64,000 nt of DNA from Thecamonas trahens ATCC 50062 (lineage: Eukaryota; Protista; Apusomonadida). The stretch lies in NCBI RefSeq assembly GCF_000142905.1, contig NW_013657627.1:162204-226203 (forward strand). Reading direction: 5' to 3'. Each line of letters starts with the position of its first letter. Position 1 is the first letter of the stretch. Positions 34,895 to 44,458 of the stretch are shown here, piece after piece. The notes under the pieces were generated by a model, which did not search any database, was not told the origin of the DNA, and worked only from the letters and a program-made list of their open reading frames with translations. The position numbers and the translations under genes are program-made.

Positions 34895-35874
34895 ATGGCG
34901 TCAGAGGGCTCACATCAAGACCGACCGGCATCAGGTCGGGCGGCATCGGGTTGGGCGGCATCGGGTCGGGCGGCATCGGGTCGGGCGGCATCGGGTCGGG
35001 CGGCATCGGACTCGTCGGATCCTGTGCCGGCGTGCGGTACTCGTATCTGGTGACAGGCGCGCTGTCGGCCGGGTGGGCGTCGTTGTTGCTGCAGCCACTG
35101 CTGCAGCCACTGGACGTGATCAAGACTCGGGTGCAGCAGGGCGCGCGGGTGTCGGCTATGGAAGCGGCACGGAGCGTGGTGCGCGACGCCGGATCGGCGC
35201 GCGGGCTGTGGCGAGGGACGGGGGCGACGCTGGCGCGGGCCATGCCGGGCGCAGGGCTGTACTTTTTCGCTCTCCACAACCTGACGCGAGCGTGGCCGCC
35301 ACCGGACGACGCATCGGGCCCGTGGGCGGCGCTGCACGCCACGGCGCTGGCGAGCGGAGCGCGGACAGGCGTGGCGGTGGTGCTCAACCCACTGGCGCTC
35401 GTCAAGACCCGCATCGAGTCGTCGCTCTACCCCGAGTACACGTCGACGGTCTCGGGCCTCCGGGCGCTGATGCGGGCGCATCCGGTCCGGGCGTTTTCCA
35501 TCGGCCTCCCGGCCTCGCTTGCGCGCGACGTTCCGTTCTCGGGCATCTACTACGGGGTCTACTCGCAGCTGCGATCGCTGACAACGGTCGATGGCGAGCG
35601 CCCGGCTTTTGTGCACGCGTTGGGCCTCGGCCTTGCGGCTGCTACCGCTGCCGTCGTCGTCACCCATCCGCAAGATGTGGTGCGGACGCGCGCCCATCTC
35701 GGGCAGTCGTCACGTGAGTTCTTTGTCGGCGGCGGCCTCTCGCTCTCGCAGCGAGTGGCTGCACTTTTCCGCGGCGTCGCCCCGCGCATCTCGCGCAAGA
35801 TCCTCCTCTCAGCTATTGCCTGGGCCTCGTTTGAGCGCATCGAGGCAGCGGTGGACGCAGTGTTTGCTGGATGA
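34895..35874 (+). CDS. SLC25A38: Mitochondrial glycine carrier-like (SLC25A38/Hem25); 5' structure uncertain
   Basis: QPLDVIKTRVQQ, LWRGT..R.MPG.GLYF, LVKTRIES..Y, RDVPFSGIY, THPQDVVRTR, PR..RK. ATG 34895 is out of frame unless 34935..35056 is spliced. Confidence 0.75.
34927..35009. repeat. 15-bp tandem repeat GGCATCGGGTCGGGC, ~5.5 copies
   Basis: Directly visible, with two single-base variants. Confidence 0.9.
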
Positions 35875-35906
35875 GCATGGCACAGGCTGGCAAGGTTCCT
35901 CTCGTT

Positions 35907-36587
35907 TTACGCACTGGCGGCGGCAGCAGCGGCGACGGCAGCGTCGATCTTAGCCTTCTCCTTGTTGAGGATGAGGCGGATGCGGTCGCGGGAGCGGGCG
36001 TTGGGCCCCTGGGCATCGTCTGGAGCGTACGGCGGGGCAATGGTGACGTCATGAATCCTGATGACCTCGCCGTCCCACTTGGCTGGCCCGGTCTTGGCGA
36101 GGACGTTGAAGACGGCCTGCGCGCGCGCCGAGACGCCGACGCCGATCTTGTCTGCTTCCGCGTAGTCTGCCCTCAGAGCTGCGGTCTCCCGCTTGCGGAT
36201 GGTCTCCGGCGGAGTGTGGACGGTGGCCATATGCGCCGCGTGCAGGGCCCCGAGCGAGTCGGCCAGACCCTCTGGCGGCGGAGCGAGGAGGACCATGCTC
36301 GCGATGGCCTCCTCCCGGAGGAGGACGAGCTTGCGCTTGGGGAACCTGCTCGCGTCCTGGAACACCACCATGCCAGACCTCGCATCGTAGGTAAACAGCT
36401 CGCCTGTGAACAGCTCCCCACACACAGGGCGCACCTCAAACGTCGCCCCCACCATGTCCTCCGCCAGCGACATGCCCGTCCCTACGGCCCCCGCCTCGCC
36501 GGCCACCGTCCCGGCACCCCCCTCCCCGCTCGCCTCTTCCCTCGGCCCGCCACCACCCCCAACAACCTCTGTCTCGTCTGCAGACAT
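35907..36587 (-). CDS. LSM12: LSM12-like (Sm-like domain plus anticodon-binding domain)
   Basis: N-terminal Sm-like GELFTYD; IGVGVSARAQAVFNVLAKT..KWDG..I...VTIAPPY anticodon-binding domain. Confidence 0.82.
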   Translation of the reverse strand: MSADETEVVGGGGGPREEASGEGGAGTVAGEAGAVGTGMSLAEDMVGATFEVRPVCGELFTGELFTYDARSGMVVFQDASRFPKRKLVLLREEAIASMVLLAPPPEGLADSLGALHAAHMATVHTPPETIRKRETAALRADYAEADKIGVGVSARAQAVFNVLAKTGPAKWDGEVIRIHDVTIAPPYAPDDAQGPNARSRDRIRLILNKEKAKIDAAVAAAAAASA

Positions 36588-36979
36588 CCACGCGTGTCCG
36601 AAGACCGTCCAGCTGGGAGTGACGTGTGTCTATGCCTGTGCCTGTGCCTGTGCCCATCCGCTTGCTTCTGGGTGCCGCTGTCGGCTGCCGGCCAAACTGC
36701 GACCTTCTGCCAGAGCGACTTCATTCGTCCGCCACTCTGTGGCAAAGAACCCACTCACACAGACCGGAATACGCATGCAATACAAAGACTAACCGCATAC
36801 CCATGTTTCTGACAAACCCTTCTACATGCCAACCCAATTTCCTGCTCATCGACGTGTACATGCTTCTGTTTTGCCTGTGCAAGTGGTCGGCGTCGCGCCG
36901 CAGTGGAGCTGGCGAAACTCACCGATCAGGCTGCGATCAGGCGAGATCAAGGCTCTGCGGGTAGCCACGACAGGTGTGG

Positions 36980-39900
36980 ATGGATGGTATGGGCATGGGG
37001 ATGGAGACACATTCGTCTCTCCCTCACATGCAGACATCGCGTAGAGGCAAGAGGGTGCGTCAGAGGCGAGGCGGGGGAAGAACGCAGAATGACTCGGGCT
37101 CGTCGACAGGAAGCTGGAGCAGGTCAGGTACGGAGACCGAGGGAGCGGACGAGGCCGACGGGGCAAGGGGCACAGGCTCCGACTCGGCTGCATCGTATCC
37201 GTACTCGGAGACAAGCTCGGCACGTGGAGGAGGCGGGGCTCCGGCTAGTGCTGGTGCTGGTGCTGGTGCTGGTGCTGGTGCTGGTGCTGGTGCTCGGCTG
37301 ACCGACGGCGACAACACGCTCACCTCGGACGGGTCGTCGCTGATGGCGATGACCGTGACCGACTCGTCGACGTACACCCTCACCGAACCGCTCTCGATCT
37401 CGGCGCTTGTGTCGCCGATGGCGATCTCTGCAGCGTCGCGGTCTGGCCCGAACGAGAGCGGGCCGATGTTCGCGTCGTCGGCTGCGGGAGCGGCAGGGAT
37501 TGGGGCAGAGATCACGGCAAGCTCGTCGTTTGTCCTTGACTCGCCCGCAGGCACGCCGCTGGCCGGCCTGAATGAGATCCCGGCGACCGAGTTTGAGTTG
37601 ACGTCTCTGCTTGGCGCCGGCGCGTTTGGACAAGTCTGGGCCGGGAGCTGGGGTGGGACCGACATTGCAGCCAAGAAGCTGAGCCTGCCAGCGGGCGCCA
37701 AGGCGAGCGTGGCCTCGCCGTTTGTGCTGGCGCGGACACTCTTGGCCGAGTCGCGGATCCTGGCGCAGATCTCGCATCCCAACTGCCTGCAACTGCTAGG
37801 CGTATGCCTCGATGACGAGTGCGTGTGCATGGTGACCGAGCTGATGCATGGCGGCGACTTGCACACGGCGCTGTTCAAGTCGTCGGACCGAGTCATCTCG
37901 CTCGCCGACGCGCTGTTCATTGTGACCGAGATCGCGCAGGGCCTCGAGTACCTCCATCGCAAGGGCGTGGTCCACGCCGACGTCAAGCCTCTTAACATCC
38001 TGCTCGACCGCAACATGCGGGTGGTCAAGGTCGCCGACTTTGGCCTTTCGCGACTGGTACATCTTGCGCGGCCGGCCGGGGTGCAAGGCACCATCTCATA
38101 CATGGCTCCTGAGCTGCTGGACGGCAACGCGACGCCGCAGCCAGAGTCTGATGTTTTTGCCTTTGGTGTGCTGACCTGGGAGGTTTTTGCGCGCACGCGC
38201 GCGTTTGTCGGCGTCGATCGGCGTACCAACTGGTACGCACCACTCAGGCCCATCACTGACGCAGTTGCGCTCCCTGTCGAGCTGGCTGCCAAGCTCGAGG
38301 ATCTTCTTAGCGCGTGCACTGCCGCAGATCCCAGTGTGCGGCCGACGATGGCGAGCGTGACCGCGGCGCTCAAGGCCTGTGGCGAGCTTGTTACCATCGG
38401 GCACGTCTTTCCGTCTGTCCCGTCAATGCCAGCCATCCATGTGAAGCGGATGGACGAGATGCAGACGGCGACAGCAGTGTTGATGAACCCGGACACCCGG
38501 GCGCTGGTGATTTACGGCTCGTTTGGGGCTGGCAAGTCTGTGCTCGCGTGCGACGTTGTTCGGCAAGCCGAGGTGCGGCGGGCGTTCCCGGACGGCATTC
38601 ACTGGATCCACCTAGGTGCACATCCCGCGATCGAGGCGCTTCAGCTCTCTCTTCTTCACGAGCTGGGAGTGACGCGAGTTGCGGCGGTGGCGTCGGTACC
38701 CGAGGGCCGGGCCAAGTTGGCGGCAGCGTTTGGTGCGTCGGCCTCGCTTCGCAAGCTTGTGGTACTCGATGGCGTGCACCATCTCCGGCACGTGGCGGCG
38801 TTTGATGTGCTCAATGCCGACTCGCGGCTGATGCTCACTACTTCGGTCCGTGCGCTCTGGCCTGCGCCGGGCGTGGCGAGCTACACGCTGTCACCATATA
38901 CGACTGCGGGCGCTCTGGAATTGCTGGCGGCGGCAGCGCGGTGCGAGACCAGCGACCTGCCGCAGCCGCTGGCGACCGAGCTTGTTGACGCGGCAGCGCG
39001 GCTTCCGCTGGCTGTGGTTATGATCGGCTCTGTGGTGCGGCGGCGACAGGCAGCCGCGGATGCGTGGGCCGAGGTGGCAGCGTCGTTTGTTTCGTCGACA
39101 GCGTCGGCGCTGAGCTCCGAGCTCTCACTGCTGTACTCGTCAGTGGCGCTCTCGGTTGCCGCGGTTGGCCCGCTCCGACATCGTTTCCACGATCTGGTCG
39201 TCTTTGCGCGGCTCGGGCAACGTGTGCCGCGGCGGCCGCTGCTCGCTCTCTGGTCCAGGCTCGCCGAGCCGTTCAACGAGGCCGACCTCGGGTTTGTTGT
39301 CCACACGCTTGCAGATCACTCGCTTGTCGAGCTCGAGCCACAGACTGGGACCATTGCGCTCCCCGAGCTGCAGACGGCGTACCTGGAGGCGCACGTGAGC
39401 GGCATGGCGGCGGCGCGAGCTCACGATACGCTCCTTGCGGCTTATGCGGGGATGAGCTCGGCCGCCGAGCTTGCGGCGACGGATGCCGGGCTTCCGTGGT
39501 GGCACTTTGCGCCTGAAGAGCCGAGCGCAGAGCGGAGCTTTTACTTTGGGTCTCTGGTGCACCATCTTGTGCGGTCAACGCGCGGGCACGAACGTGTAGT
39601 AGCGCTTTTGGTCTCGTTCGAGTGGGTTGTGGCGCAGATTGAGGCCAACTCGCTGACGGCGCTGCTACTGGACCTGCAAGTTGGAGTGGATGCTACGGCG
39701 GGAAAGGAGGCATGCAAGTCGCTAGAGGCGCTTGCGATTGCGCTTGCACACTCTGCACCGGCGCTACGGTCCGAGGCGTTTGGCAGGACGGTGGCGGAGC
39801 AAGTGTACTCGCGGCTGGTCGGCGTGAGTGATCCGCTGCTTGCGCCGCTGGTGGCTGCTGCGCGAGCAGCGTCGCAAGTTGAGCTTGTTGCCGGCGAGCT

Positions 39901-42745
39901 GGAGGGTGTCAAGGCTGCGTGCGTGCAGAACTTGGAGGGCCACACGGGAGCGGTCCGTGCGGTTGTGGTGACGAGGTCGGGGACGACGGCCGTGTCGGGA
40001 TCTGAGGACATGACGGTCCGGGTGTGGGATCTTGTATCCGGAATGCAGGTCCATTGCCTGAGAGGGCACAGCTACTATGTTCTCTGTCTCGCACTCTCGA
40101 CGGACGAGACGGTGGTATACTCGGGCTCGGGCGACCACACAGTCATGGCATGGTCGCTCATGTCTGGTGCGGCGCTGGCGGTCTTTCGCGGGCACACCGA
40201 CCGGATCCAAGCGGTGGCAGCACTATGGCTGAGTGGCTCTCAGGCGATGGTCTCGGGCGGCAATGACAGCGCGTTGAGAGTGTGGGAGACAGGCAGCGAG
40301 AGTAGCGTCGCGATCTTGCCTGCCGCACACGACGGATGGATCCGAGCTGTGGCTGTATCGGGAAGAGTTGTGTACTCTGGCGGGGTGGACAAGGTTATTC
40401 GCGAGTGGCGTGTGGTTGAAGTGCCGGCTGTGGCGCTGGAGGCCTGCGGCAGGTTTGTTGGGCATAGCAAGACGGTCATTGCGCTCGCGGTTTCGACTGA
40501 CGGGTCGAGGCTAGTGTCTTCGAGCGACGACAAGACGGCGCGAGTGTGGGCGACGGCAGACCAGACGTGCGTGGCGGTGCTTGCTGGCCATTCGCAGGTT
40601 GTGCGGACGATCGCGCTCGCGGGCGACGACACGCTTGTGGTGACCGGCTCCAACGACCGAACGCTGCGCGTGTGGGAGGCTAGCAGCGGAGTCTGTGTCC
40701 GCGAGCTTGCGGGACACGAGGGGTGGGTCCGAGCTGTTGCGGGCGTACCTGGCTCTGTGCGGTTTGTGGTGTCGGGCGGAGCCGACGCGCGGATCAAGGT
40801 GTGGGACCTGGAGCGCGACGGCGAGGCGCCTGTGGCGCTTGCTCGTGAACGGGTTTGGATCTATGCTGTAGCGGTGCTGGCGGTAGACGGCGGCGACAAC
40901 CTGGTGGCGTGTGGCGGTACCGACTGCCTGGTACGGGTTTGGAGTGTGGGCGGGGCGTGCATCCGGGTACTTGCTGGCCACTCTGGATGGGTGCGGGCGC
41001 TGGCGTGGCTCGGCTCGGGTGAGCTGCTGTTCTCGGGCTCAAACGACGCGACGATCCGAGTATGGGAGGTGGCAAGCGGCGCATGTTTGATGAGTCTCAA
41101 CAGGCATGAGAAAGACGTGCGGTCGCTGTTTGTCTCGGGCCGCCTGCTTGTGTCTGGCGGAAACGATCGGCGAGTGGCGGTCCATGCAGTGTCTGTGTCG
41201 CAGCGCGAGCGCGAGGCTGCAGCCTCGCTGGTCGGCGATGCAGTTGTCCACGAGAACGTGGTGCGGGCGGTGGCACACTCTCCAGCGGCTTGCGTGGTGC
41301 TTTCTGGCTCGGAGGATACGAACCTGCTTGCGCTTCGTGAGGATCTGTCTGGCGAGGTTGCGCGAATGGCACACGGCGGGTTTGTCATGGCGCTCGACGT
41401 AAGCGGCGACGGATGGCAAGTTTTGTCGGGATGCTCAGATGGAAGCGTGTACGTGTGGAATCTACGCGCTGAGGCGCTTGGGACGCTTGTGGGCAAGTAC
41501 GCGGGAGCTCACAATGACTGGGTCACCGGAGTGCGATGGAGCGTTGGACGGGACGGGAGCAAGGCGGCGGTGGCGGTGGGCCTGGACGGGACGCTGAGTG
41601 TGTGGCGCGGCGCACGGACGGGCGGACTCGAGCTTGTGGGCGTGCTGGGCAATGGGAGCGCAGCGCGGTCTGTGGATGTGGGATCGGGGGATGGGCGCGC
41701 ATATGCTGGATATGCGGACGGGTCGCTTGTAGTGTGGGAGTGGGATGCGCGGCGCGAGGTGCACGCGCTGTTTGGGCGCGACGAGGAGGGCATGCCGATC
41801 CGGCTTGCGCCAGACGGAGCGACACTGGTATGCGGCCTGCCATCGGGCGAAGAAGTTGTGGGGCGAGCCGGGACTGGACGGTGGACGGTGGAGCGCCGGG
41901 CATCGGGCGCGGACGGGCCAGTGACAGCGGTTGCGTTCTCCAGCGACTCGCGGTGGTGCGCCACGGGATCGACCGATGGTGTCGTCCGGGTCTGGCCTGT
42001 GTCTGGCCTAGCGGAGGCATACGTGCTTGCGGCGCACTCGGGATGGGTGACGGACGTTGCGTTTGGGCGCGGGAGTGGTGCTGGGCGCGAGCGGCTGATC
42101 TCGTGCTCGCGCGACGGAGTCGCTGCGGTGTGGGAGGTTGGGCAAGCCGAGGCGGTGTGGCGGCTGGTGGGGCATGGATGTTGGGTCCGCGGCGGCGTGC
42201 TACTCGAGGATGGCGAGAGCGCGGTGACGTGGTCGGACGACGGAACGCTGCGGGTGTGGGCCGGGGCTGCCTCCTTGGCGACGCTGTCGAGCGGGAGCGG
42301 CGGAGTGGTGGCATGCGCTGTCGGGAACGACGGGACGGTTGCCGTGTCCGGGAGTGTGACCGGCGAGGTGCGTGTGTGGCGGGCAAGTCGAGGCAGCGCT
42401 CTGCGGAGCTGGACGTCGACGGTGGTGGTCCCGCGCGGGCCGCGGGTAGAGGTGATCTCGCTCTATGGGCGGCTCGCGCTGGTTGACCACGGCCGAGTGT
42501 GGATTGACTTGGAGAGCTGCGGACTTGCGAGCGCTGACGACGTGGCCGAGGGGCAGATGGTGGTGAGCGTGGCCGAGGGCGGGACTGGCGTGCTGCTGCA
42601 CGGCGGCGGGGGGCGGGCGGTGGGCGCGTTTGACTTTGACCACGCGGTGGTCGGAGTGGCGGCGATGGGAGTGGTGGTCGGGGTTGTGTGCGAGGGCGGG
42701 CGAGTGTATGTGTTGCAGACTCCCAGCGCAGGGCGGTGTGGTTGA
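36980..42745 (+). CDS. TKL kinase + NB-ARC (Apaf-1-like STAND) + helical domain + WD40 repeats
   Basis: Kinase: LGAGAFGQV, IAAKK, HPNCLQLLG, HADVKPLN, DFGLS, YMAPE. NB-ARC: IYGSFGAGKS, FPDGIHWIHLG, LVVLDGV, LMLTTS, RLPLAV. APAF1-like helical YFGSLVHHL..LLVSFEWV. Many GH...SGS.D.T.RVW repeats from ~39930. Confidence 0.88.
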   Translation: MDGMGMGMETHSSLPHMQTSRRGKRVRQRRGGGRTQNDSGSSTGSWSRSGTETEGADEADGARGTGSDSAASYPYSETSSARGGGGAPASAGAGAGAGAGAGAGARLTDGDNTLTSDGSSLMAMTVTDSSTYTLTEPLSISALVSPMAISAASRSGPNESGPMFASSAAGAAGIGAEITASSSFVLDSPAGTPLAGLNEIPATEFELTSLLGAGAFGQVWAGSWGGTDIAAKKLSLPAGAKASVASPFVLARTLLAESRILAQISHPNCLQLLGVCLDDECVCMVTELMHGGDLHTALFKSSDRVISLADALFIVTEIAQGLEYLHRKGVVHADVKPLNILLDRNMRVVKVADFGLSRLVHLARPAGVQGTISYMAPELLDGNATPQPESDVFAFGVLTWEVFARTRAFVGVDRRTNWYAPLRPITDAVALPVELAAKLEDLLSACTAADPSVRPTMASVTAALKACGELVTIGHVFPSVPSMPAIHVKRMDEMQTATAVLMNPDTRALVIYGSFGAGKSVLACDVVRQAEVRRAFPDGIHWIHLGAHPAIEALQLSLLHELGVTRVAAVASVPEGRAKLAAAFGASASLRKLVVLDGVHHLRHVAAFDVLNADSRLMLTTSVRALWPAPGVASYTLSPYTTAGALELLAAAARCETSDLPQPLATELVDAAARLPLAVVMIGSVVRRRQAAADAWAEVAASFVSSTASALSSELSLLYSSVALSVAAVGPLRHRFHDLVVFARLGQRVPRRPLLALWSRLAEPFNEADLGFVVHTLADHSLVELEPQTGTIALPELQTAYLEAHVSGMAAARAHDTLLAAYAGMSSAAELAATDAGLPWWHFAPEEPSAERSFYFGSLVHHLVRSTRGHERVVALLVSFEWVVAQIEANSLTALLLDLQVGVDATAGKEACKSLEALAIALAHSAPALRSEAFGRTVAEQVYSRLVGVSDPLLAPLVAAARAASQVELVAGELEGVKAACVQNLEGHTGAVRAVVVTRSGTTAVSGSEDMTVRVWDLVSGMQVHCLRGHSYYVLCLALSTDETVVYSGSGDHTVMAWSLMSGAALAVFRGHTDRIQAVAALWLSGSQAMVSGGNDSALRVWETGSESSVAILPAAHDGWIRAVAVSGRVVYSGGVDKVIREWRVVEVPAVALEACGRFVGHSKTVIALAVSTDGSRLVSSSDDKTARVWATADQTCVAVLAGHSQVVRTIALAGDDTLVVTGSNDRTLRVWEASSGVCVRELAGHEGWVRAVAGVPGSVRFVVSGGADARIKVWDLERDGEAPVALARERVWIYAVAVLAVDGGDNLVACGGTDCLVRVWSVGGACIRVLAGHSGWVRALAWLGSGELLFSGSNDATIRVWEVASGACLMSLNRHEKDVRSLFVSGRLLVSGGNDRRVAVHAVSVSQREREAAASLVGDAVVHENVVRAVAHSPAACVVLSGSEDTNLLALREDLSGEVARMAHGGFVMALDVSGDGWQVLSGCSDGSVYVWNLRAEALGTLVGKYAGAHNDWVTGVRWSVGRDGSKAAVAVGLDGTLSVWRGARTGGLELVGVLGNGSAARSVDVGSGDGRAYAGYADGSLVVWEWDARREVHALFGRDEEGMPIRLAPDGATLVCGLPSGEEVVGRAGTGRWTVERRASGADGPVTAVAFSSDSRWCATGSTDGVVRVWPVSGLAEAYVLAAHSGWVTDVAFGRGSGAGRERLISCSRDGVAAVWEVGQAEAVWRLVGHGCWVRGGVLLEDGESAVTWSDDGTLRVWAGAASLATLSSGSGGVVACAVGNDGTVAVSGSVTGEVRVWRASRGSALRSWTSTVVVPRGPRVEVISLYGRLALVDHGRVWIDLESCGLASADDVAEGQMVVSVAEGGTGVLLHGGGGRAVGAFDFDHAVVGVAAMGVVVGVVCEGGRVYVLQTPSAGRCG

Positions 42746-42797: not shown

Positions 42798-44458
42798 CTA
42801 CGACGAGGACGAGGCGGCAGGAGCATCGACGGATGCGGACTCGAGCTCCGGGTGACGGCGGCAGCGGTAGAGGAGGATGTAGCCGACGTGCCAGTCGCCG
42901 CCGCCGGAGAGCTTGAGGATCTCGTCGGGCGAGACTTCAGTGACAACGTCGTCATCAAACTTCATCCAGCGGTCACCAGCGTCACGGACCCAGCCGACGT
43001 AGTGGCCGGCGTCGGCGGAGCGGCCCTGGTGAGTGACGACGCCGCAGAGCTCGTACATGCCAGTCTTGTTGGGGAGGTCGGGCATGTTGTCGATGTCAAG
43101 CGGGGCGTAGGGGAATGAGGCCGCGGCATCGGCCGAGGTGGACGGGGTGAGGGAGGAGGGTGCGGCGACGTCCATGGGCGCGGGCTCGTCGTCGGCAGGA
43201 GCAGCCTCTGCGTCGTCTTTGTCCTTTGCGGCGGAGCCAGCGCGGGCGTCGAGGGCGGCCTCTGTGGCGGCCTCCTGGGCAGCGAGGATGACCTCGCGGT
43301 TGACGCGGAGCTTGGCCTGGAGGTCGGGCGAGCACATGTCAAAGACGTCGAGCTCCATGGGGAACTTGACGGAACGGAGGATCTTGGCCTTGACCTGGTC
43401 GTTGGCCTTCCAGAAGAAGCGGACCATGGAGACGGTGAGGTATGCGGGGAGCTTTGAGATGGCGGCGCTCTTGAGGTAGAGGGCTGAGCGGCCGAGCGAC
43501 GACGAGCTCTTCTCGATCTCCTCGGACATACCGGCCTTGAGGCCTTCGACGAGGTAGTTTGTGTCTGCGGTGATGTTGCAGGTGAGCTTGCCAAAGGTGG
43601 AGGTGCGGACCGAGGGCGGCTCGTCGGCAGCCTCGAGGCACTGCATGGTCTCTGTCAGCTCGCCCATGAAGAGCTTGTCCATGGCGTTGCGCGGGAGCTG
43701 GGTGGAGAGCATGGAGAGGAGCGTGGTCCAGCACTCCTCGGCGTCCTGCTGCTTGAAGCCACCGTTCTGGGCGCGCTCTGCAAACTGCGGCAGCAGCTGG
43801 CGGAACATCATGACAAAGGAGAGCGGGACGACCTTGTCCGTCGACGCGCTGACCTCCTCCCAAAGGCCGCGGATAGCAGCGGTGAGCATAGCCGGGGGCG
43901 ACTGCTCCTGCGGAGCGTACTTTGCCAGAGCGGCAGCCAGCTCGGGCACGCCTCGAAAGCACTGGAGGGTAGCATTGAGATAGCAGGTGTTGCCCAGGTT
44001 CTGCAAGCCCGGCGGGTTGACGACGGCCAAGCGAGCCTGATCCTCGACGGACAAGTCCTCGACAAAGACGACCTTCTCTGTCGGCGGCGGCGGCATCTCC
44101 TCAGCACTTCCAATGAGCATGACCTTCTTGCCCTCCTTGAGGCCGAGCTCCTCCCACTTTGCATTGTCCTTGACATTGCCGCCCTTCAAGCCCATGATCT
44201 TCTGCTTCTCCACAGGCACTCCAGTCAGGCTGTACAGCTGCGCCTTGAATGCCGTCACAGGCTCGCTCGTCTGCACCTCCACGTCGAACATCTGCTTGCC
44301 CCACTTGACCTTGACTGTCTCCCCGGAGGCATGTAAGGCGACCTGTGTGAGTGTGTGCAGGGGGAGGGGGGGGAGGGGGGGGGGGGGGGGGGGGGGGTAT
44401 GGGCATGGTATGAGGGGGATGGTGTAGGTGATGGCGTACGGTTGTAGGTCGACTGCAT
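42798..44458 (-). CDS. USP14: Ubiquitin carboxyl-terminal hydrolase 14 / UBP6; exons 44440..44458 and 42798..44314
   Basis: Spliced MQSTYNL KVKWGKQ Ubl domain; GLQNLGNTCY, QQDAEEC, THQGRSADAGHY, LSGGGDWH. Confidence 0.95.

Follow-up and report, generated by a model that had tools for sequence, protein, structure and literature searches.

A predicted Apaf-1-type protein of the protist Thecamonas trahens with an N-terminal kinase and altered nucleotide-sensing residues

Can an Apaf-1-like receptor be built around a protein kinase in a unicellular eukaryote, and how would such a receptor work? The question is raised by an unbroken open reading frame of 1923 codons (36974-42745, + strand; first ATG at 36980) in a 64,000-nucleotide stretch of DNA from Thecamonas trahens ATCC 50062 (contig NW_013657627.1, positions 162,204 to 226,203), referred to here as the window. 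An original prediction had read this frame as one gene encoding an N-terminal tyrosine kinase-like (TKL) kinase, an NB-ARC domain whose P-loop region resembles that of Apaf-1, an Apaf-1-like helical domain, and more than 15 WD40 repeats, and had proposed an immune or cell-death switch in which ligand binding would cluster kinase domains instead of recruiting caspases. The analysis described below indicated that the kinase occupies what is predicted to be the effector slot of an Apaf-1-type STAND protein. The reading favored here, with a probability of about one half, is that the protein, with its kinase in the place of the CARD, works as an induced-proximity kinase switch rather than as a caspase platform.

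Gene structure and domain architecture

The kinase and NB-ARC-WD40 parts of the frame are predicted to form a single conserved gene, because a co-linear ortholog was found and because the kinase-then-NB-ARC order was kept in four paralogs. The ortholog, P0001, was encoded on a Tara Oceans contig (run ERR868484; locus L021) and was co-linear with the window gene by tblastx from the kinase N-lobe to the last residues. Identity between the two proteins was 58% in the kinase, 48% in the module extending from NB-ARC through the second helical domain (HD2), and 46% in the WD40 part. The four T. trahens paralogs (loci L001, L002, L013, and L014) likewise encoded a kinase and then an NB-ARC domain within one open frame. 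One contig, taken from a public T. trahens run, matched the genome co-linearly at 37302-39547, across the kinase/NB-ARC junction, with no joints. The chance that a random frame would stay open at such a length at 65% G+C was calculated by our own arithmetic to be about 4e-22. Nothing in the public-run contigs, the ortholog, or the paralogs split the kinase from the NB-ARC-WD40 part, so the gene held together as originally proposed, and its host, a marine flagellate, is indeed a unicellular eukaryote. The features of the gene, all on the + strand, were as follows.

36980..42745, +, whole gene: 1921 codons counted from the first ATG, then the stop codon
36980..37594, +, N-terminal Ser/Gly/Ala-rich low-complexity region, the head of the protein (first ~205 residues): 0 Pfam families matched; not conserved in the ortholog
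37235-37301, +, GA-type simple repeat within the low-complexity region
37595..38368, +, protein kinase domain, TK/TKL-like: Pfam, residues 208-465
37973..37996, +, catalytic loop H-A-D-V-K-P-L-N: catalytic Asp, Lys, and Asn present
38036..38044, +, DFG motif of the kinase: invariant in 6/6 aligned kinase domains
38405..38422, +, linker V-F-P-S-V-P from kinase to NB-ARC: kept in the ortholog and all four paralogs
38456..39157, +, NB-ARC domain, comprising the nucleotide-binding domain (NBD), the first helical domain (HD1), and the start of the winged-helix domain (WHD): Pfam PF00931
38516..38539, +, P-loop G-S-F-G-A-G-K-S, intact: Lys invariant in 85/85 aligned relatives
38756..38773, +, Walker B L-V-V-L-D-G: first Asp kept, second acidic residue replaced by Gly
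38837..38845, +, sensor-I position T-T-S: T-T-R in relatives; aligns to L-L-T-T-R of Apaf-1
38999..39010, +, GLPL-type motif R-L-P-L, kept
39158..39853, +, WHD and HD2 (APAF1_C-like): model matches Apaf-1 through HD2
39359..39367, +, 'MHD/LHD' position of the WHD, L-P-E: His replaced by Pro; I-P-K in the ortholog
39926..42394, +, WD40 region: at least 18 blades, probably three propeller units
42395..42742, +, C-terminal tail: no family match, poor model; last ~56 residues conserved in the ortholog

The kinase domain at residues 208-465 matched the Pfam families Pkinase (E 8e-47) and PK_Tyr_Ser-Thr (E 5e-46). Its best solved relatives were EGFR, ABL, MLK4, TAK1, and CERK1, all from the TK/TKL side of the kinome, which agrees with the TKL kinase originally predicted. 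When aligned with EGFR and the paralogs, the Gly-rich loop, beta-3 Lys, alpha-C Glu, HxD Asp, Asn, DFG, and APE were all present, and the kinase looks catalytically complete and active. It is a non-RD kinase, in which Ala precedes the catalytic Asp (H-A-D), and HAD was also found in P0001; the catalytic loops of the paralogs carried HRD (L001 and L002) or HCD (L013 and L014). NCBIfam yielded generic kinase matches only, all far under their cut-offs. Searched against its own genome, the kinase domain matched the NB-ARC-fused paralogs best (45-52% identity), followed by a candidate sixth kinase-NB-ARC locus, possibly truncated (C64), and then by at least 45 other T. trahens kinases, with E down to 1e-39. 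The match to P0133, a bacterial kinase-NB-ARC protein, reached only 1e-22, and host kinases were thus better matches than the bacterial fusions.

Between the kinase and the NB-ARC domain, the V-F-P-S-V-P stretch aligned with Apaf-1, and a V-P..L-P-P motif resembling this linker occurred in the consensus of the nearest relatives. With residues 470-960 scanned alone, the NB-ARC profile (PF00931) gave 60.6 bits, where the cut-off is 23.5 (E 1.7e-16), and was matched over positions 4-246 of its 248, while APAF1_C remained under threshold (18.5 versus 22.8 bits, E 0.002), as did Dark_WHD. Among the 44 nearest relatives, 43 passed the APAF1_C threshold and 29 that of an Apaf-1-like WHD model. The best sequence match in the PDB was human Apaf-1 (1z6t, E 7.5e-11), with an alignment that ran from the linker before the P-loop through the NBD, HD1, and WHD and included a separate second stretch in HD2. 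PADLOC defense models had no match in the NB-ARC part.

Residues 470-960 were modeled with AlphaFold from an alignment of 85 relatives, with a mean predicted local distance difference test score (pLDDT) of 93.2 and a predicted template modeling score (pTM) of 0.90. The best Foldseek matches to this model were the closed, ADP-bound Apaf-1 structures 3sfz, 1z6t, and 3shf (TMq 0.73-0.77, root mean square deviation ~4 A, ~500 columns), compared with TMq of 0.38-0.42 for open apoptosome chains. CED-4, Dark, and plant NLR NB-ARC structures came after Apaf-1, and all of the top matches had a probability of 1.00. The alignment of the model with Apaf-1 extends over ~500 columns and takes in HD2, which is therefore present in spite of the weak APAF1_C score, and the NBD-HD1-WHD-HD2 module is modeled as a closed Apaf-1-like fold.

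The C-terminal half of the protein consisted of WD40 repeats throughout, according to the Pfam WD40 families. A repeat hidden Markov model (HMM) made from the protein's own units detected 18 blades at residues 983-1805, with gaps that could hold more, and a fold model of this region contained ~80 strands, with pLDDT above 95 in the first propeller. The architecture that had been proposed from the window was confirmed: the kinase and the NB-ARC domain by their Pfam scores, the Apaf-1 likeness of the P-loop region by alignment with Apaf-1, the helical domain by the AlphaFold model, which matched Apaf-1 through HD2 even though APAF1_C was sub-threshold, and the more than 15 WD40 repeats by the 18 units of the repeat HMM.

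The domains found in front of related NB-ARC modules were tabulated for a profile set of 171 sequences, made up of the 150 best relatives, the T. trahens paralogs, and a few further matches. An N-terminal TIR domain was present in 82 of the 171 and a kinase in 10, with trypsin-like domains in others. The kinase-bearing sequences comprised five T. trahens genes (one counted twice, as a public protein and as a locus frame), two metagenomic orthologs, and the bacterial proteins P0133 and P0062. The N-terminal slot appears to be interchangeable among these relatives, holding a kinase, TIR, or other domains. The idea that the kinase fills an effector slot, which underlay the earlier proposal, held up in this comparison, given the same short linker in all paralogs and the TIR, trypsin-like, and other domains at that place in the nearest NB-ARC relatives.

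Altered residues of the nucleotide switch

Three nucleotide-sensing positions of the NB-ARC module differed from those of its relatives. The second acidic residue of Walker B is Asp in 76 of the 85 relatives and Gly in the window protein; P0001 has D-D. At the sensor-I position, where 78 of the 85 have Arg, the window protein has Ser and P0001 has Pro. The His of the WHD 'LHD' motif, present in 81 of the 85, is replaced by Pro in both the window protein and P0001; in the AlphaFold model, the helix that follows the WHD hairpin begins at this site. All three altered codons were identical in an independent contig, and they are therefore not assembly errors. P0001 likewise lacks the sensor-I Arg and the WHD His, and these two losses therefore predate the split between the two organisms. 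The paralog L001 and its metagenomic ortholog P0002 keep all three canonical residues (D-D, Arg, and L-H-D).

The closed state of Apaf-1 and NLRC4 is stabilized by the WHD His, which makes contact with the beta-phosphate of ADP (PMC7583971). The structure ranked third among the three best matches to the model, 3shf, is the deposited R265S mutant of Apaf-1. With an intact P-loop and these replacements, the window copy probably still binds nucleotide, and its hydrolysis and ADP-locking are probably poor. If so, the WD40 lock and the kinase would likely contribute more to control than any nucleotide timer. The absence of the three residues complicates a simple scheme of ligand binding, nucleotide exchange, and oligomer formation. 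With three residues lost naturally and the rest well conserved, the module is also a possible test case for how far STAND switches depend on those residues.

Origin of the fusion and NB-ARC families of T. trahens

An exhaustive profile-free search with residues 470-960 returned 3285 proteins at E <= 0.001, headed by P0001 (E 1.6e-113) and P0002 (E 4e-42), after which identities were 27-38%. A word-indexed homolog search with the NB-ARC part alone returned 8 proteins, and kinases dominated when the kinase and NB-ARC were used together as the query. The nearest relatives outside the apusomonads were bacterial wherever gene context was checked. The checked contexts included Trypsin_2-NB-ARC pairs next to AbiEii and Trypco1 genes and TIR-NB-ARC-APAF1_C-WD40 genes near GerE and CHAT genes. 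In one bacterial locus, L023 (JGI Ga0374083_0059059), two tandem Trypsin_2-NB-ARC genes were found with a Trypco1 gene between them and an AbiEii gene alongside; the NB-ARC domains of these two genes rank among the nearest relatives of the window NB-ARC.

In an NB-ARC tree constructed without metazoan Apaf-1, the apusomonad kinase genes formed one clade (FastTree 96; IQ-TREE SH-aLRT, the Shimodaira-Hasegawa-like approximate likelihood ratio test, 94). Within it, the window gene paired with P0001 (support 99) and L001 with P0002 (100). P0133 and P0062, which have the order Pkinase-NB-ARC-APAF1_C-WD40 and come from bacterial neighborhoods with extracytoplasmic function (ECF) sigma factors, the type VI secretion system protein VipA, FHA, and restriction-modification genes, were placed outside this clade. 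Forcing all kinase-bearing sequences together, a constraint that was chosen after the first tree had been seen, cost 113 log-likelihood units and was rejected by the approximately unbiased test (p-AU 0.0002). The rejection and the separate placement of the two bacterial proteins indicate an independent fusion of the kinase to this chassis in apusomonads, an event predicted to precede both the duplications within the family and the split from the uncultured marine relative.

Bacterial genes of this type occurred in two contexts. The gene at L025:6001-10392 lay next to an FHA-domain gene and an Eco57I/MmeI-type methyltransferase gene, and on the P0133 contig the Pkinase-NB-ARC-APAF1_C-WD40 gene stood between ECF sigma-factor genes and adjoined a Pkinase-Macro gene. 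A scan of JGI metagenome contigs with a 4-sequence alignment produced 80 loci, nearly all of which matched the kinase half or the NB-ARC half only, and no new close ortholog. The sole JGI contig match that spanned the kinase C-lobe and the start of NB-ARC, L055 (JACZCT010116850.1), was 29% identical and may represent another kinase-NB-ARC fusion.

The NB-ARC profile matched 21 places in the T. trahens genome, which fell into four groups: kinase-NB-ARC genes, TIR-NB-ARC-WD40 genes, an ankyrin-TIR-NB-ARC gene, and one NB-ARC-like TPR protein. The two main families are represented by the following loci.

L001, 1096-7437 (= G000:C30), +, kinase-NB-ARC paralog: canonical NB-ARC motifs; gelsolin repeat after WD40
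G000 loci L003-L006, L008-L012, L015-L017, and L020 (for example L010:1629-6488, +), TIR-NB-ARC-WD40 family

The five kinase-NB-ARC genes differed in their C-terminal parts, which were WD40 in the window gene, L013, and L014, WD40 and gelsolin in L001, and RWD in L002. Two of the paralogous frames were identical to the public proteins XP_013762518.1 and XP_013760351.1, which are named only as kinases ('serine/threonine protein kinase' and 'TKL protein kinase'). The Tara Oceans relative of L001 (L022; P0002/P0151) carried the same fusion, gelsolin included. At L018 (G000:C64:123615-133614, -), a kinase 40% identical to that of the window gene adjoined a partial NB-ARC match with short open frames; this may be a sixth kinase-NB-ARC locus, truncated or intron-bearing.

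At least 12 TIR-NB-ARC-WD40 genes were found in T. trahens. They shared 88-95% DNA identity over 1.5-4.7 kb and had very short branches in the tree. Most were located within ~5 kb of a contig end, and several had short open frames and may be pseudogenes or contain introns. Such features suggest a repertoire that is young, amplified, and in part decayed. At the contig ends that carry the family, a search for telomere repeats found none that were clear, so these ends may be mere assembly breaks at repeats. The NB-ARC domains of this family were too distant from those of the kinase family for phmmer to link the two. The gene at L007:5769-8813 (-; G000:C70) encoded many ankyrin repeats along with TIR and NB-ARC and was placed at the base of the TIR-NB-ARC clade. 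Compared with the window gene, the amplified TIR family bears a far stronger resemblance to an immune repertoire.

The window gene lies among ordinary housekeeping genes, outside any receptor cluster, and its G+C content is that of its surroundings. Its upstream neighbor is a mitochondrial carrier gene, and an ankyrin-WW protein and an ABCG-type transporter are encoded nearby. The convergent downstream neighbor (42801-44291, -) encodes a USP-type deubiquitinase with an N-terminal ubiquitin-like domain, and its stop lies ~55 bases from the stop of the kinase-NB-ARC-WD40 gene. Between the carrier gene and the window gene there is a 313-codon open frame (35871-36809, +) with no Pfam match; one public contig extends from the carrier gene across this frame to the 5' end of the kinase gene. 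No synteny was found between the window and the Tara Oceans contig of the ortholog beyond the gene itself.

Candidate mechanism, alternatives, and known systems

In the resting state of an induced-proximity kinase switch, the WD40 propellers together with the WHD and HD2 would keep the NBD closed. Binding of a ligand at the propellers would open the protein and allow the NBDs to join into an oligomer. The oligomer would gather the N-terminal kinases, whose targets could then be one another, the Ser-rich N-terminal region, or recruited substrates. That such a switch has an immune or cell-death role is suggested by analogy only, the pointers toward defense or death being the STAND chassis, the TIR-bearing relatives, and the non-RD kinase.

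Several points weigh against this reading or against the gene model beneath it. The five public runs with sequence at the locus are of unrecorded library type and stored as contigs, and they were not counted as expression evidence; their contigs span 36900-40700 only (the 5' 60%), with no joints, and leave the last 2.2 kb uncovered. The exact encoded protein was absent from the public protein collection in a look-up with five alternative start codons, and the details of the deposited gene model may therefore be different. Without the sensor-I Arg and the WHD His, the module could have lost all ability to switch or oligomerize. The WD40 part was about as conserved in the ortholog as NB-ARC (46% versus 48%), a pattern more in keeping with a conserved ligand than with an arms race against pathogens. 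The unrecorded library type of the runs and the missing public protein would suit an artefact in which two neighboring genes, or a mis-assembly, had been read as a single frame, but this is extremely improbable in view of the 1923 codons without a stop, the independent contig that is co-linear over the kinase/NB-ARC junction, and the recurrence of the fusion in the ortholog and four paralogs. Recent acquisition of the whole gene from bacteria is likewise very improbable. Bacteria do encode proteins with the complete architecture (P0133 and P0062), and the nearest NB-ARC relatives outside the apusomonads are bacterial; however, the apusomonad kinase clade was monophyletic, a single clade of all kinase fusions was rejected, the kinase was closer to kinases of its own genome than to P0133, and the gene does not differ from its surroundings in G+C.

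The remaining alternatives accept the gene and differ on what it does. The NB-ARC module could be a degenerate, non-cycling scaffold that binds nucleotide at most, in which case the protein would be a constitutive scaffold for the kinase or would serve a canonical paralog such as the C30 gene as its 'sensor' partner, in the way that plant sensor NLRs with degenerate motifs depend on helpers. Such a state would account for the replacement of three residues that are 89-95% conserved in the 85 relatives, two of them in both orthologs and thus old and tolerated, for their retention in L001 and P0002, and for the presence of the R265S mutant of Apaf-1 among the best structural matches. Nevertheless, loss of the WHD His in NLRs leads to auto-activity more often than to inactivity, the P-loop is intact in both orthologs, the fold is modeled at very high confidence, the module is 48% identical between them, and there is no evidence of a physical link to a paralog, which makes a non-cycling protein unlikely. 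It is more doubtful that the ortholog pair gave up its nucleotide lock and handed control to the non-RD kinase, yielding a phosphorylation-gated apoptosome-like scaffold or an obligate partner of the canonical paralog; under that scenario the sensor-I Arg and WHD His would have been lost before the species split and the second Walker B Asp later, in T. trahens. A different possibility, which deserves tentative consideration while falling short of being probable, is that the same mechanism serves ordinary intracellular signaling (stress, cytoskeleton, or nutrient sensing), in the manner of LRRK2/ROCO, and not immunity or death. The 1:1 ortholog and the second pair, L001/P0002, indicate an old and stable family, the WD40 region shows no hypervariability, the C-terminal modules of sister genes are gelsolin or RWD, the locus sits amid housekeeping genes with no receptor cluster, and the recent amplification typical of immune repertoires was seen instead in the TIR-NB-ARC-WD40 family. 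On the other side, characterized NB-ARC-type STAND proteins act mainly in defense or death, with some bacterial ones serving as transcription regulators (PMC7159879), and the non-RD kinase and a chassis held in common with TIR proteins also point to defense. The induced-proximity kinase switch remains the preferred reading of the window protein.

Apaf-1, Dark, and CED-4 share with this protein the NBD-HD1-WHD-HD2 fold, to the extent of the TMq of 0.73-0.77 to closed Apaf-1, and in Apaf-1 also the WD40 propellers after HD2 and an effector domain that immediately precedes the NBD. Unlike Apaf-1, the window protein has a kinase in place of the CARD, with no CARD match in Pfam, and the second Walker B Asp, sensor-I Arg, and WHD His are replaced. 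Apaf-1 has 15 WD40 blades, compared with at least 18 here. The original view of an Apaf-1-like protein thus stands for architecture and fold and fails for close kinship, as the score to Apaf-1 was 45 bits against 120-160 bits to the nearest non-apusomonad NB-ARC-WD40 proteins; the window protein is predicted not to be orthologous to animal Apaf-1.

Plant kinase-NLRs (PNL, Tsn1, and Pkn-NLR) also have an N-terminal kinase fused to NB-ARC. Mosses have a kinase-NB-ARC-LRR class, PNL (PMC3352924), and in wheat Tsn1 the kinase domain alone gives a hypersensitive response for which the HRD motif is needed (PMC11218826). Tsn1 sets a precedent for a kinase that acts as the output of an NLR. These receptors differ from the window protein in that their sensor is an LRR rather than HD2 and WD40 (no LRR match was found by Pfam), in that they represent a separate lineage and fusion event, and in that the window kinase is non-RD. 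The bacterial proteins P0133 and P0062 have the identical domain order on an Apaf-1-type chassis but differ in their position on the NB-ARC tree, in the rejection of a single origin (p-AU 0.0002), and in their bacterial context; no published function for bacterial Pkinase-NB-ARC-APAF1_C-WD40 proteins was found in the literature searched. TIR-NB-ARC-WD40 proteins, known from bacteria and the red alga Chondrus (PMC7145615), have the same chassis and are the commonest near relatives of the window NB-ARC, but their effector is a TIR domain (NADase-type), and the T. trahens TIR family is a separate and recently amplified NB-ARC lineage.

LRRK2/ROCO proteins likewise combine a nucleotide switch, a TKL kinase, and WD40 in one chain. 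Their switch is a Roc GTPase with COR rather than a STAND ATPase, and their kinase is C-terminal of it; neither Roc nor COR was matched by Pfam in any segment of the window protein. In the NOD1/NOD2-RIPK2 system an oligomerizing STAND receptor activates a TKL kinase through induced proximity, but that kinase is a separate protein recruited by CARD, whereas the window kinase is covalently fused. The predicted protein would be a covalent form of the principle that a STAND receptor activates a kinase by proximity, for which animals use separate proteins (NOD2-RIPK2) and some plants use Tsn1-type receptors.

The design is not unprecedented, since the same architecture occurs in bacteria and kinase-NB-ARC fusions occur in plants. 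No mention of NB-ARC or Apaf-1-type proteins of Thecamonas was found in the literature searched, where the terms co-occurred only in unrelated passages. What appears to be new is an Apaf-1 chassis with a kinase for the CARD in a eukaryote from the sister group of animals and fungi, together with an unusual, natural absence of residues that sense the nucleotide. No closer relatives of animals plus fungi are known than the apusomonads, and the origin of the animal apoptosome protein is still debated. T. trahens has the full Apaf-1-type chassis twice, once in an old and stable kinase family of five members, two of which have orthologs in an uncultured relative, and once in a young and amplified TIR family, an instance of effector swapping on one chassis within a single protist.

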